Shown: one piece after another, positions 27,931-64,000 of the stretch
How the letters are laid out: each line of letters begins with the position of its first letter
Numbering within the stretch: position 1 is the stretch's first letter
Origin: Azolla caroliniana
Taxonomy: Eukaryota; Plantae; Polypodiophyta
DNA length: 64,000 nt
Direction: 5' to 3'
Assembly: GCA_043228905.1 (NCBI GenBank)
Contig: JBHGNT010000016.1
Coordinates: 4,960,001 to 5,024,000, forward strand
The notes under the pieces: generated by a model
What the model was told of the DNA's origin: nothing
Databases searched by the model: none
What the model saw: only the letters and a program-made list of their open reading frames with translations
Translations under genes and position numbers: made by a program

Positions 27931-29733
27931 AACTTCTGAGTGTAAGGTCTATCATAATGGTCTGATCTTTAAGCCTACTTGGGCCATAATACGTAGGAAT
28001 CGTCGTGCAATGGTAGCTTGTCACACTCGATTAAAAGATTGTGTGTTCAATATCATGCAACTTGTCACATCTACATTAAAAGATTGTGTATTTGATACCA
28101 TATGATCGTCACGCTGTACATTAACAGATTGTGTGTTTAATATCATGTGATAGCATTGTGGTACAATGGAACATTAAAAGGTTGGGTGTTTGATATGATA
28201 TGATATTGTGATATGATGTGATATTGTGACTAGTTTATGAAATCATAGTACCTGGTGCGGCAATAATGGCGCCTCACACTCTACCTCAAAAGGTTGCAAG
28301 TTCAATTCATATTATATCATGGCTTATTCAAGTTGAACATGTAGGATTTGTGTTGCAATGGTAGTGCGTCTAACTCTAGATCAGAAGGTTGTGTGTTTGA
28401 TTCATATCGGGGTCCTTTTTGGAAGGTCAACCACAATGATGGTCTTATTCATTGGCCATAACAATACATAGGATTCATCATGTAATAGCTAGTTCATATT
28501 TTTAACACATAGGGTATGTGGTGCAATGGTGGCATGTCTGACTCCAGATCGACCGGTTACGTGTTCGATTCACGTCTGTTTCATTTCTGAAAGGTTGACA
28601 ATAATAACGGTGTTATCCATTGGCTTCCTTCGGCCATAATAATATGTAGGATTAGTCATGCAACTAGGTCTTTTTTCAAACATGTAAGATCCGTGGCGCA
28701 ATGGTAGCGTGTCTGACTCCGGATAAGAAGGTTGCGTGTTCGATTCATTTCAAGAAGATCAACCACAATGGTCTTAATCGTCGGCGTCCTTGGGCCATAA
28801 GAATATGTAGGATACGTCGTGCAATATGTTTTCATGCAACTAGCTCATTTTACGAATATGTAGGATACGTGGCGCAATGGTACCACATCTGACTCTAGAT
28901 CAGAAGGTTGTGTGTTCGATTCTCACCGGATTCATTTCAGGAAGGTCGACCACAATCACAGTCTTATCCTTGGGCCACAACAGTATATAGGATTCGTCGT
29001 GTAATAACATCTCGGCTACATTGACGGTCTTATCCTTGGGCGATAACAATGACGCCTTCTTGGATTTGTTGTGCAATAAATTTTTCGAACACGTGTAGGA
29101 TCTCTAGCACAATGGTAGCATGTCTAATTCTAGGTTAGAAGGTTGCATGTTCGATTCACGTCAGGTTCATTTTAGGAAGGTCGACCACAATGACAGCCTT
29201 ATCCAACGACCTCCTTGGTGCATAACAATATGTAGGATTTGTCGTGCAATAGATAAGGCGTTCGATAGTGTAACTAGTTCATTTTTCGAACACGCAGGAT
29301 CCGTGGCGCAATGTTCATTTCAGCAACGTCGACTAGAATGACGGATAAGCGTCGGCCTCCTTTGGCCATAACAATATGTAGGATCCGTTGTGCAATAGAT
29401 AAGGAGTGTTCGTTAGTGCATTAGTTCATTTTTTAAGCACGTAGGATCCATGGCGCAATGGTAGTGTGTTTGACTGCAGATCAGAAGGTTGCGCGTTCGA
29501 TTCACGTCGGGTTCATTTTTGGAAGGTCGACCACAATGACAATCTTATCTTTCAGCCTCCTTGGGCCATAACAATATGTAGGATTCCTCGTGCAATAGCT
29601 AAGTTGTGTTCAATAGTTCATGTTTAGAACACGTAGGATCTATGGCGCAATGGTAGCGCGTTTGACTCCAGATTAGAAGGTTGTGTGTTCGATTCACGTC
29701 AGGTTCATTTCATGAAGGTCGACCACAAAGATA

Positions 29734-31494
29734 TGTTGGGATCTGGTTATGAATGAAGAGGACACTTGGTGAAAACCGGAGGAGGTTTGGTGAGAACTGG
29801 AAGAGAAGACATATTTGTAAATATATTTTGAGTAAGCCTATTGAGGCTATATTTGTAAATAGCCCTAAGTTCATATAAGTATAAATATGACTTAGGGCAA
29901 TCACTTTGATAGTATGTGTGTAACTATTGTCATATTGTTGTTATGAGTATAACTGTTGTAGACAGAGAGAGAGAGGGAGAGAGCAAGAGAGTAGCTACAA
30001 GCACTCTATGTTGTAATTGGTGAGAACTGGAAGAGAAGACATATTTGTAAATATATTTTGAGTAAGCCTATTGAGGCTATATTTGTAAATAGCCCTAAGT
30101 TCATATAAGTATAAATATGACTTAGGGCAATCACTTTGATGGTATGTGTGTAACTATTGTCATATTGTTGTTATGAGTATAACTGTTGTAGACAGAGAGA
30201 GAGAGGGAGAGAGCAAGAGAGTAGCTACAAGCACTCTATGTTGTAATTGGTGAGAACTGGAAGAGAAGACATATTTGTAAATATATTTTGAGTAAGCCTA
30301 TTGAGGCTATATTTGTAAATAGCCCTAAGTTCATATAAGTATAAATATGACTTAGGGCAATCACTTTGATGGTATGTGTGTAACTATTGTCATATTGTTG
30401 TTATGAGTATAACTGTTGTAGACAGAGAGAGAGAGGGAGAGAGCAAGAGAGTAGCTACAAGCACTCTATGTTGTAACCACCGTCTGACGAAGATCGCGAG
30501 CATGAGGTCGTTGCCTCTGTGTCTCAACTTTGTATTTCCTCTCATATAGTAATAGTTGGAGTCCGTGGTCTCCCGTGTTTTTTCCCTATTAGGGTTTTCC
30601 ACGTAAATATTCTGTGTACTCTCTACTTCCTATTTCTGTGATTCAAGACTCGGTTGTGGCCGAGGAATATTCCACGATATTCTCTTCAATCCGGCATCAA
30701 AGCGAACAACATAGGAAATGGAAGAATCGTTCGATAGCATGTTCAAGCTCACTGGTTCCAACTACTCAATGTGGAAGTCGAAGATGAGGGATATGGTACT
30801 GGTTAAAGATCTTTGGTTGCCGGTTCAATTCAGGGACAAGAGACCGGATAAGATCGATGCCACAATGTGGTGTTGGGAGATAGGTCCCTCTGGATGGGAA
30901 GGGAGAAGAACAGTGCCGATGAACAAACTTGGCTGAGGCCGAAACCGGATGACGAGTACTCGGCTACGGAGAGCCGGATGGTACAGACCCGGTGAAGACC
31001 GGATGAGGAGTATCCGGCTACGGAGAGCCGGATGGTACAAACCCGGTGAAGACCGAATGAGGAGTACCCGGCTACGGAGAGCCGGATGGTACAGACCCGG
31101 TGAATACCGGATGAGGAGTACCCAGCTACGGAGAGCTGGATGGTACAGACCCGGTGAGAACCGAATGAGGAGTACCCGGCTACAGAGAGTCGGATGGTAC
31201 AGACCCGGTGAGAACCGGATGAGGAGTACCCGGCTACAGAGAGCCGGATGGTGCAGACCCGGTGAGAACCGGATGAGGAGTACCCGGCTACGGAGAGCCG
31301 GATGGTGTAGACCCGGTGAGAAGTGCTCACCGGATGAAGAGACATATTCGTAAATATGTTTCTGAGAGTTCATCATGGCTATGTTTGTAAATAGCCGAAA
31401 AGTCATATTAGTATAAATATGACTTAGGGCAAACTCTTAGCTTATGTGGTTGTCATTCTTGTTGGTGCAAGAAAAGAGAGAGCGCGTAACTGTG

Positions 31495-31531
<37 letters not shown>

Positions 31532-32834
31532 GTCGTTGCATCTGTTGTAACCGCCGCCTGTGGTGAGGATCGTGAGCACGAGGTCGTTGCCTCTGTGAAC
31601 TCATTGTTGTACATTCTAACATAGTGATAGTTTGCAGCCTGTGGGCTGCCGTGATTTTTCCCTTAGTTTGGGTTTTCCACGTAAACATCCTGCGTACTCT
31701 TCTCTTCTTCGTGTCGTACTTTATTTCCCGTTTTTTCTGTGTATGATTCTAAGCTCGGTTGTGGCCGAGCATTGCGTATAGGGAGCGTTTCAGTTCTTGT
31801 CATGTGGGAGGTGATGCACATGAAGACGAAGACATACATCCGGTGTTTCATCAACATGAGCTTGTACAACAACTTCAATGAAGAGAGCAAGGCTCATGAA
31901 CTCAAGGAGAAGATCAACATCATGTTCCAGAACAAGAATGCCGTTAATCGGGTTTCGGTATTCTGGAAGCTAGTGAGGCTCCGGTACCAAGACGACTCTA
32001 GTATGGCAGAGCACATGAATGCCTTCTAGGGGTTGATACACCAAGCAACCTCGTTGGAAGTACCTCTTGCCGATGAGGTACTCGCATTACTCCTGCTCGG
32101 TTCCCTCCCAGATAGTTGGTAGACACTAGTTGTCACGTTGGGCAATGTCGGGCCAGAAGGAAAACAGTTGTCCCTAGCAAGGGTAAAATCAAGCTTGCTA
32201 GATGAAGCTCGCCGGAAGGACTGGGAGTTCGGAACCGATCTGAAGGCCTTGGTCACGGAAGATGACCACAACTGGGGAAGAGGCCGCTATCGAAGTCCCC
32301 AAAACTGGGACAAATCGGGTATGAGGTCGAAGTCAGGGGGAGGCCTATTTGCTTCTACTGTGGGAAGCCATGGCACTTCTAGAAGAACTGCTGATATTTC
32401 CGGAAAGAGAAAGAAACCGGTACTACCGATTTGAAGAAGAGTTCGGACCGAAATGGTTCGGACTGGAGAGGCCTGGATCGGAAGGGAACGTCGGAAATTG
32501 CGACAAGTGAAGAAGAACCGATGCTCATTACTGAGGAGAATGAGTTAAACCTAGTCGGCGACGAGACAACGTGGGTTGTCAATTCCGGAGCGTTGTCCCA
32601 CCTAAGACCAGATCAGAAATGCTTCTCATTCTACATAGCTGGTGATCATGGTTGTGTCCGGATGGGGAATGAAGGTACATGCCGAATTATCGGCATAGGA
32701 GATGTGTTGTTGACGACATCAACCGGATGCAAGTTGCTGCTGAAGAATGTCCGACACGTTCTGGAGGTTCGACTAAACCTGATATCATCCGGTCGGCTAG
32801 ATGATGAAGGCTACATGGGTAGCATCCGGAACGA
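29734..32834 (+). mobile_element. Truncated, degenerate Ty1/Copia retrotransposon (5' LTR 29734-30688, PBS, gag, zinc knuckle, protease)
   Basis: TG...CA LTR with three tandem copies at 230-bp period; PBS-like ccggcatcaaagc (iMet type); gag MEESFDSMFKLTGSNYSMW; CFYCGKPWH zinc knuckle; protease-like WVVNSGALSH; multiple stops. Confidence 0.88.
30871..31802 (+). mobile_element. Solo LTR (family A) nested in the Copia gag; carries ~7 x 54-bp tandem units
   Basis: TGTTGGGAGA...GTCA termini, TSD TGTGG; gag frame resumes after it. Confidence 0.9.
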
Positions 32835-63398: not shown

Positions 63399-63470
63399 GG
63401 ATCCGTGGCGCAATGGTAGCGCGTCTGATTCCAGATCAGAAGGTTGCGTGTTCGATTCACCTCGGGTTCA
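63399..63470 (+). tRNA. trnW(CCA): tRNA-Trp(CCA), two changes (C32U and one T-stem mismatch)
   Basis: Otherwise matches the consensus. Confidence 0.5.
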
Positions 63471-63531
63471 TTTCAGGAAGGTCAACCACAGTGACAAACT
63501 TATCGGTCGGCCTCCCAGGGCCAGAACTATG

Positions 63532-63952
63532 TGTTATTAATTAGGTAAGTAATTAAGAGTTAATTAGTACGTAATTATGTGATGAAGTTAAGTGCGGAAC
63601 ATTATATGATATGTGTGTGAGAGGAGAGATACATTTATGAACAAGACAAGATGGGGGATGAGTAAACTAGAATGTATATTATAAAACATCATCATCGAAC
63701 AACAAAAAACCCACAATGAGGTAGATATACATCTCATGTGCAAAGGTAGATATGTATGACTAGAATATAGGTACTAATGTGTAAGTCCTATATTAAATGT
63801 ACTTAGGAGTGGAGGATCTAGAATATCCGACTTAAGTACAAGGTCCTATTTCAGTCGTTATAGTCAACACTTCTAACTAGATCTATCTAGGTAACTACGA
63901 AGTTACATGGTTGACTAACTAACTAAACTAAGTTGACCTTGATCTCTCAACA
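63532..63952. mobile_element. Solo LTR family B, higher-order repeat copy 3
   Basis: TGTT...AACA termini, flanks CTATG/TTATG, same position in the spacer as copies 1 and 2. Confidence 0.85.
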
Positions 63953-64000
63953 TTATGTTTAGGATTTGTCGTACAATAGTTAACGCAAAATCCGTGGCGC

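Follow-up and report, generated by a model that had tools for sequence, protein, structure and literature searches.

From position 27 kb onward, the window, the 64,000-nt stretch of an Azolla caroliniana contig analysed here, holds 17,454 bp of array sequence built from a cytosolic tRNA-Trp(CCA) gene and its spacer, with CDC20 and PPR genes 2 kb away. The consensus monomer is 192 bp long and consists of the 72-nt tRNA followed by a 120-nt spacer, which is lengthened to 129 nt in a variant with a 9-nt insertion. Array decomposition yielded 94 tRNA-bearing units, 66 of them full length (defined as having at least 70 of the 72 tRNA positions) and 28 partial. The ~17 kb of array sequence and the 80-100 units counted by eye in the initial annotation therefore agree with measurement, and its description of a head-to-tail repeat of a 72-nt tRNA and a ~120-130 bp spacer fits the unit, but not its orientation throughout: 87 of the 94 units are on the plus strand, and the other seven are inverted in one segment at 33.9-37.3 kb. 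Rfam gave 40 tRNA matches at gathering score between 28.8 and 63.5 kb, ARAGORN called 33 tRNA genes and placed nine Trp(CCA) genes within 51.8-57.4 kb, and nhmmer found ~96 tRNA-Trp-like matches from 27.4 kb onward as well as older tRNA-Trp-like remnants on the minus strand at 1.8-6.0 kb. TRF recognised at most 6.3 copies per run.

The array is interrupted by at least seven retrotransposon insertions. Heavily decayed, insertion-split remnants of tRNA-Trp and spacer (27417..28060, plus strand), orthologous to remnants in a contig from a related species (L011), precede the main array, which had been taken to start at 28340; the main array does lie in that interval, but its faint remnants begin already at 27417. 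Block 1 (28238..29731, plus strand; ~9 units) is older and more decayed than the rest. The inverted units form two blocks on the minus strand, one with five tRNA units (33936..34829) and one with two (36587..37313) that is split by a 308-bp solo LTR (36823-37130) with a 5-bp target site duplication (TSD). On the plus strand follow a block at 38758..41342, with a ~420-bp solo-LTR-like insertion at ~40693-41107; the main block of ~55 units at 48968..59300, in which the same kind of insertion recurs at ~53117-53537; a lone unit with an insertion on either side (60197..60460); and a last block of ~13 units (61258..63534), after which the ~420-bp insertion appears for the third time and runs up to the window edge. 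The window thus ends in ~470 bp of an insertion common to two upstream blocks, each of which then has more array after it, so the continuation past the edge that had been claimed is likely, although the sequence at the edge itself is not array.

One of the insertions is a Ty3/gypsy element on the plus strand (41343..48967) with a DUF4100 gag, reverse transcriptase, RNase H and integrase in broken frames. Its LTRs (41343-42031 and 48259-48967) differ by 4.8%, its 4-bp TSD (ACGT/ATGT) lies 2-5 nt upstream of a tRNA copy, and its primer-binding site (42036..42054, plus strand) is a perfect 19-nt complement of the 3' end of tRNA-Trp plus CCA. The element is short, non-chromovirus-like and Trp-primed, with a 4-bp TSD at NCGN and relatives in Riccia and Adiantum, features by which, rather than by a tree, we liken it to Phygy (Neumann et al. 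2019, PMC6317226). A solo LTR with the same termini and with 105-bp internal repeats (34830..36586, plus strand) has its own 4-bp TSD, a decayed NCGN, within a spacer, and an internal gag fragment 65% identical to the 41343 element (37314..38757, plus strand) comes from a related gypsy. The remaining insertions include nested copia fragments together with part of the 34830 LTR, inverted (29734..33935; 230-bp and 54-bp repeats, Pol_BBD ORF at 32431-33006) and, within 59301..61257, an unclassified insertion at 59.3-60.2 kb and an inverted copia solo LTR at ~60.43-61.25 kb. Integration targeted to tRNA genes, as for Ty3, is not needed to account for the gypsy insertions: both gypsy-type insertions have 4-bp NCGN-type TSDs, the NCGN target preference reported for the Phygy clade (PMC6317226) suffices, and the distance to the tRNA varies, at -5 to -2 for the gypsy and ~60 nt upstream for the related solo LTR, in what are only two events.

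The spacer of every full monomer holds a remnant of a second tRNA-Trp, exemplified at 52720..52772 (plus strand), where the 5' end with its upstream bases is followed directly by the B-box core and the anticodon arm is gone. Aligned without gaps, the remnant matches tRNA-Trp at 19 of 24 positions, which 2 of 3000 shuffled sequences equalled, and none of 3000 did so with gaps; this significance was obtained with the upstream flank included and standard penalties, an earlier test with lax gaps not having been significant. The 192-bp unit is therefore a tRNA plus a second tRNA with a deletion, and the sites of the remnant are no better conserved than the remaining spacer. On a larger scale, a ~4.8-kb block has been duplicated in tandem (39842..57090, plus strand; copy 1 at ~39.8-52.26 kb minus the gypsy, copy 2 at ~52.26-57.09 kb). 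With the gypsy spliced out the offset between the copies is 4790-4855, and the duplication is older than the gypsy insertion. Pairwise divergence of the array copies is 20-22%, and their tree, built with FastTree, is star-like. An assembly artefact is ruled out, since internal duplicates are 88-96% identical and a contig from an independent assembly (L002) is collinear over 1.75 kb of the array at 97% identity; the stretch is also present in the data of four independent studies. A relative ~18% diverged has matching tRNA and spacer sequence at the orthologous place beside CDC20, which indicates that the array is old.

Most copies are broken. The tRNA part carries a mean of 8.7 changes per 72 nt, corresponding to ~12% decay from the consensus; 62 of the 66 full-length copies have one or more structure-breaking changes, 18 of the 66 have lost the CCA anticodon, mostly through C>T, and a D-arm deletion that passes through the A box has been carried to 13 copies by duplication. 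C>T and G>A together make up 43% of 2,415 substitutions and are concentrated at CG and CHG (transition rates of 0.19 at CG, 0.17 at CHG in the tRNA part, 0.07 at CHH and 0.02-0.04 at A/T sites), in agreement with the C>T/G>A decay that the initial annotation had ascribed to most copies. As a mutation pattern, this CG/CHG-biased C>T decay implies that the array has probably been methylated over the long term. Among recently duplicated pairs, the tRNA has diverged as much as the spacer, both at A/T sites (3.5% versus 4.4%, p=0.31) and at CG (14.9% versus 15.3%), and on the copy tree neither inner nor tip branches show a difference between the two parts in changes per CG/CHG site; a test on the same tree for early selection followed by late neutrality was not significant (p=0.45). 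The equal divergence in recent block duplications indicates that the bulk of the array is a neutral pseudogene satellite. Taken over all divergence, A/T sites have changed less in the tRNA (4.3%) than in the spacer (9.8%), and less at A- and B-box sites (2.2%) than at other tRNA sites (5.2%; p=0.037, uncorrected), indicating that constraint has not been absent throughout. The behaviour of a tRNA-derived satellite, which had been proposed, is what the bulk displays: neutral decay among retrotransposons with a methylation-type mutation signature. Trp is among the rarest isotypes, and translational demand, which the initial annotation had held to be an unlikely cause, does not explain the array.

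Against this background, only four copies, all of one lineage, combine an unbroken cloverleaf with the A and B boxes of the Pol III promoter and a T4 terminator. The best of them (52592..52663, plus strand) reaches 63.9 bits in Rfam with a full cloverleaf, A and B boxes and T4 terminator, a score that answers the concern that even the best copies might fail a covariance model, and it departs from the array consensus by one G-U wobble change. It had been thought the only perfect copy, which is incorrect: the copies at 40173..40244, 61817..61888 and 62889..62960 (all plus strand) are structurally intact as well. A near-intact copy at 50411..50482 (plus strand) has a single change, at the invariant U33, and two changes break stems in its duplicate at 55266. 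A box, B box and T4 terminator are retained in 9 of the 66 full-length copies, and over all copies the presence of T4 is not significantly associated with tRNA integrity (p=0.12). The excess of near-intact lineages is slight (variance of 12.6 versus 7.0 in column permutations; 4.0 versus 0.6 lineages with three or fewer changes, a difference that becomes weaker under broader merging of lineages). These data suggest that the four-copy lineage was under selection for longer than the rest, with a weak excess of conservation.

Tandem clusters of tRNA genes are known from plants. Those of Arabidopsis, the Pro homoclusters and the 27-fold Ser-Tyr-Tyr cluster (Hummel et al. 2020, PMC7544208), resemble the Trp array in being tandem and co-oriented, with one isotype, a repeated spacer and short T terminators, and they carry the CG (and CHG) methylation that the mutation signature suggests here; their copies are mostly intact but silenced, whereas 94% of full-length copies here are broken, and the Trp array is larger (at least 94 units), older, riddled with LTR elements and of another isotype. 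Like other large tandem homoclusters, seed-free plants included, such as maize tRNA-Ile (28 genes; PMC11700998) and the Ceratodon purpureus tandem repeats (clusters of up to 110 genes; PMC12652284), it packs five or more single-isotype tRNA genes into 5 kb and has tandem units with a common spacer in one predominant orientation; unlike the maize and Ceratodon copies, which are young, often identical and of other isotypes, and unlike homoclusters in general, most of its copies are not intact (4 of 66 full-length copies are). It likewise has the long head-to-tail arrangement, the monomer within 100-400 bp and the higher-order block duplications of a satellite, but its star-like tree and block duplications of only 1-5 kb do not indicate ongoing homogenisation. 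The array is probably the decayed end state of a plant tandem tRNA homocluster. Among ferns, Azolla has more than 10,000 tRNA-like or pseudogene sequences (PlantRNA 2.0, 10.1101/2021.12.21.473619), and locally proliferated tRNA-Asp and tRNA-Glu clusters are given for Azolla filiculoides and Salvinia cucullata, respectively, in the supplement of Li et al. 2018 (PMC6786969). These share local amplification of a single isotype and skewed anticodons consistent with methylation decay, and in the text of that supplement they are counted rather than analysed as arrays, and Trp is not named. None of the papers on plant tRNA clusters that were consulted describes a Trp array in its text, although Suppl. 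Fig. 3 of Li 2018 and Fig. 5 of PMC13437025 may show Trp clusters. The novelty first claimed for a Trp array of such scale thus extends, as far as these sources go, to the isotype, and not to scale or kind, in view of the 110-gene clusters and the water fern Asp and Glu clusters; the array is a large, old example of known plant tRNA-gene clusters, among which Trp is apparently new.

We consider it probable (about 0.7) that the array is an old tandem tRNA-Trp gene cluster turned pseudogene satellite, the bulk of which has no coding role. A cytosolic tRNA-Trp gene would have been duplicated in tandem with its flank beside CDC20, and the middle of one copy in the pair would then have been lost, in that presumed order, to give the unit of tRNA plus the remnant seen today. 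An early burst, reflected in the star-like tree, would have amplified this unit, with unequal crossing-over or replication slippage as the likeliest mechanism, and CG/CHG methylation, the presumed source of the observed signature, would have silenced the array as in Arabidopsis. The ~12% decay, the re-duplication of 1-5 kb blocks, the inversion of one segment and the LTR insertions are all seen in the sequence and appear to have come later. By birth and death, the tRNA and T4 of one sub-lineage seem to have stayed intact far longer than those of neighbouring lineages, as the copies show with modest statistics.

An explanation that departs from this history only in its claim about present-day function is that the array is a reserve tRNA cluster, with four intact copies still under selection and expressed in restricted tissues, and the rest debris. 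The four copies do group in a single clade and have T4 terminators, all six changes in the clade are structure-compatible versus 49% array-wide (p~0.01, for a clade chosen post hoc), its ancestor has no tRNA changes versus 10 spacer changes, its tRNA differs from that of the sister lineage (50411/55266) by 3-7% versus 12-15% for the spacer, and the Arabidopsis Ser-Tyr cluster offers a precedent for reactivation, in root tips (cited in PMC13437025). Within the clade, however, rates are similar (1-5 of 72 tRNA positions versus 6-9 of 119 spacer positions), the sister lineage has gained three damaging changes since its last duplication, and the upstream CAA motif is absent at -7 to -3; among sequencing runs, no RNA run containing the stretch was found, which is uninformative for tRNA. 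We therefore regard present-day service as unlikely. A broader proposal is distinctly doubtful, namely that in this fern lineage many tRNA isotypes have given rise to satellites and that the Trp array, with its selected intact sub-lineage and conserved boxes, is an active Pol III/TFIIIC domain and possibly a source of primer or PBS-matching small RNA for Trp-primed gypsy elements.

It is improbable, too, that Pol III boxes or RNA are what maintains the array, whether it served as a TFIIIC-bound boundary or heterochromatin organiser or supplied primer tRNA, 3' tRNA fragments or siRNAs acting on Trp-primed gypsy elements. The slightly better conservation of the boxes is a weak, uncorrected signal that old selection or alignment bias could produce; the spacer remnant has lost the anticodon arm and retains an A-box-like and a B-box-like core, but its sites are conserved no better than other spacer; and the proposal is favoured by the tRNA-Trp primer-binding site of the element inside the array but opposed by the spread of a deletion through the A box to 13 copies. 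That the monomer corresponds to the "185-195 bp putative centromere repeat" of water fern genomes, and the array a (peri)centromeric satellite, is very improbable: its length falls within the range used in PMC6786969, its block duplications resemble higher-order repeats and its setting is TE-rich, but that study required runs of >100 copies, far from the divergent copies and short TRF runs here, CDC20 and PPR genes are close by, and plant centromeres are poor in tRNA genes (PMC13437025). A tandemly amplified tRNA-derived SINE would also have a tRNA head with A and B boxes followed by unrelated sequence, yet the consensus head here is an exact tRNA that ends in a T4 terminator, the units have neither a poly(A) or simple-repeat tail nor flanking TSDs, and tRNA plus spacer lies at the orthologous locus in the relative, leaving this origin scarcely credible.

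Read as an old cluster turned satellite, the array preserves a record, dated and open to dissection, of the conversion of a tRNA gene into satellite DNA, from the origin of the unit through burst, methylation decay, block duplication and TE invasion to the survival of one intact lineage. Azolla is an outlier with ~7,500 tRNA genes, which a 2026 review tentatively links to rapid growth (PMC13578239); arrays of this type offer a plain explanation for such counts, much of which may be silent pseudogene satellite. The addition of Trp to the isotypes of plant homoclusters argues that clustering follows the accident of amplification more than translational demand.

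The initial annotation described a tandem tRNA-Trp(CCA) array, and such an array exists: 40 tRNA matches between 28.8 and 63.5 kb reach the Rfam gathering score, ARAGORN predicted 33 tRNA genes, and the consensus unit is 192 bp, comprising a 72-nt tRNA followed by T4, plus 120 nt of spacer. The top Rfam match, at 52592-52663 (63.9 bits), has a complete cloverleaf and the anticodon CCA; the odd anticodons CTA, GCA, CAA and TTA are CCA decayed by one or two steps. Array sequence above 27 kb adds up to 17.45 kb, and wrap-around decomposition yielded 94 tRNA-bearing units (66 full length, 28 partial), in agreement with the ~17 kb and 80-100 units first estimated by eye. 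Most units are head-to-tail as described, but 7 of the 94 lie in an inverted segment (33.9-37.3 kb). Continuation past the window edge, also claimed, is likely, because the edge block is one of three that share a ~420-bp solo LTR. We take the tRNA to be of the cytosolic type, based on its eukaryotic A and B boxes and on what is known of plant tRNA-Trp. The 19-nt PBS of a gypsy element within the array matches the tRNA 3' end plus CCA exactly, indicating that the array tRNA is the host's working sequence.

The array is not an assembly artefact, since its internal duplicates are 88-96% rather than 100% identical, an independent metagenome contig (L002) tracks window positions 53484-55300 unit by unit (49 mismatches in 1,752 nt), and sequencing runs from several studies contain up to 40% of sampled words. 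A perfect 56-bp tandem duplication in the spacer at 55103-55214, missing from L002, is either very recent or an assembly slip. The synteny anchor, 2 kb from the array edge, is a CDC20/Fizzy WD40 gene (25138-26325, + strand; best named match Ceratopteris, 80%, for the gene at 25645). This match and the gypsy RT relatives in Riccia and Adiantum (below) point to a fern host, probably Azolla: A. filiculoides reportedly has tRNA-Asp clusters (PMC6786969), and the closest DNA is from a set of metagenome assemblies that contain several related species. In a relative whose contig (L011) is ~82% identical across the CDC20 locus, the orthologous position downstream of CDC20 holds tRNA-Trp copies that have decayed but whose spacer can still be recognised (spacer-only score 51.5, versus a shuffle maximum of 44.5), and the array seed is thus older than the split from that relative.

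Several other features were observed nearby. Positions 1-722 are a partial inverted duplicate (91%) of the CDC20 upstream region, and 1836-6018 (- strand) holds older, heavily decayed tRNA-Trp remnants, with 3040-3111 scoring 55.9 bits (Rfam); because CDC20 is also linked to remnants of this sort in a relative's contig (L007), the CDC20/tRNA-Trp locus may be duplicated and inverted. A 120-aa ORF at 6826-7185 (- strand) resembles a LINE zinc-finger end by eye and has no Pfam match. The 6,626-bp copies at 11205-17830 and 17931-24556, which lie on either side of a 100-N gap (17831-17930), differ by one base and double a PLS-type PPR gene (583 aa, with E motif), are almost certainly a scaffolding artefact.

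The spacer holds what is left of a second tRNA-Trp: 19 of 24 positions match the tRNA 5' end and its upstream flank (2/3000 shuffles), and a B-box core and then the 3' end come after these in order (0/3000 when long gaps are allowed), so the 192-bp unit is a tRNA pair of which one member was gutted. Judging from L011, the ancestral unit was, tentatively, shorter. The monomers form a star-like tree in which inner branches are short and tips are paired, indicating one early amplification burst followed by block duplications. A 4.8-kb tandem duplication (about 39.8-52.26 and 52.26-57.09 kb) aligns throughout at 94% (offset 4790-4855) once the gypsy element is removed, and is therefore older than that insertion, whose LTRs differ by 4.8%. 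Besides one inversion, the array has taken at least seven LTR-element insertions. Three 230-bp tandem repeats, 99% identical, lie within a copia LTR (29787-30476), and the 54-bp repeats (30943-31322 and 60881-61163) and 105-bp repeats (33108-33830 and 35686-36310) are parts of LTRs; within an insertion at 59301-60196, ~250 bp is repeated and a 151-aa ORF gives no Pfam match.

The gypsy element (41343-48967) is Phygy-like, with broken frames, a DUF4100 gag and RT relatives in Riccia and Adiantum. Priming by the array tRNA, combined with a position 2-5 nt upstream of one of its copies, looks like Ty3-style targeting to tRNA genes. However, the element's 4-bp TSD, ACGT, fits the NCGN target preference reported for Phygy elements (PMC6317226), and a solo LTR that shares the element's termini lies ~60 nt upstream of another tRNA, also at an NCGN-type site. 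Based on these two insertion events, sequence preference would suffice to explain the gypsy site. That the array is an active Pol III domain tied to Trp-primed elements is quite improbable.

Full-length copies carry 1-15 changes each (mean 8.7), and transition rates are 0.19 at CG, 0.17 at CHG, 0.07 at CHH and 0.02-0.04 at A/T sites, a bias that is probably the footprint of lasting CG/CHG methylation. The bulk of the array is neutral: between recent duplicate pairs, tRNA and spacer differ similarly at A/T sites (3.5% versus 4.4%, p=0.31) and CG sites (14.9% versus 15.3%), they diverge equally in the monomer tree, an 11-nt deletion across the A box/D arm has come, by spreading, to be shared by 13 copies, and of the 66 full-length copies only 9 retain the A box, B box and T4. 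The copy at 52592, originally singled out as perfect, does score best, but four copies (40173, 52592, 61817 and 62889), all with T4 and forming one clade, have no structure-breaking change. All six changes in this clade are tolerated, versus 49% array-wide; lineages with three or fewer changes number 4.0, versus 0.6 in column permutations (47 lineages), an excess that fades upon merging at 12.5%; and conservation is somewhat higher at box sites than elsewhere in the tRNA (p about 0.04, uncorrected). We read the clade as a birth-and-death survivor composed of putative genes, a lineage that selection, or conversion from working genes, may have held intact longer.

By the features tested, the array is neither a SINE nor a homogeneous centromeric satellite. 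Tandem tRNA homoclusters are known in plants, including the methylated, silent Pro and Ser-Tyr clusters of Arabidopsis (PMC7544208), a 28-copy tRNA-Ile cluster in maize (PMC11700998), clusters of up to 110 genes in Ceratodon (PMC12652284) and Asp and Glu clusters in water ferns, with Asp in A. filiculoides (PMC6786969). The novelty suggested for a Trp array apparently holds for the isotype, as Pro, Ser/Tyr, Gln, Ala, Ile and Cys and not Trp are named in recent surveys (PMC13437025), but not for the kind. The array is real, large and old, and seems not to have been described before as a Trp array; compared with silenced plant tRNA clusters, it represents the decayed, satellite-like end state of such a cluster.
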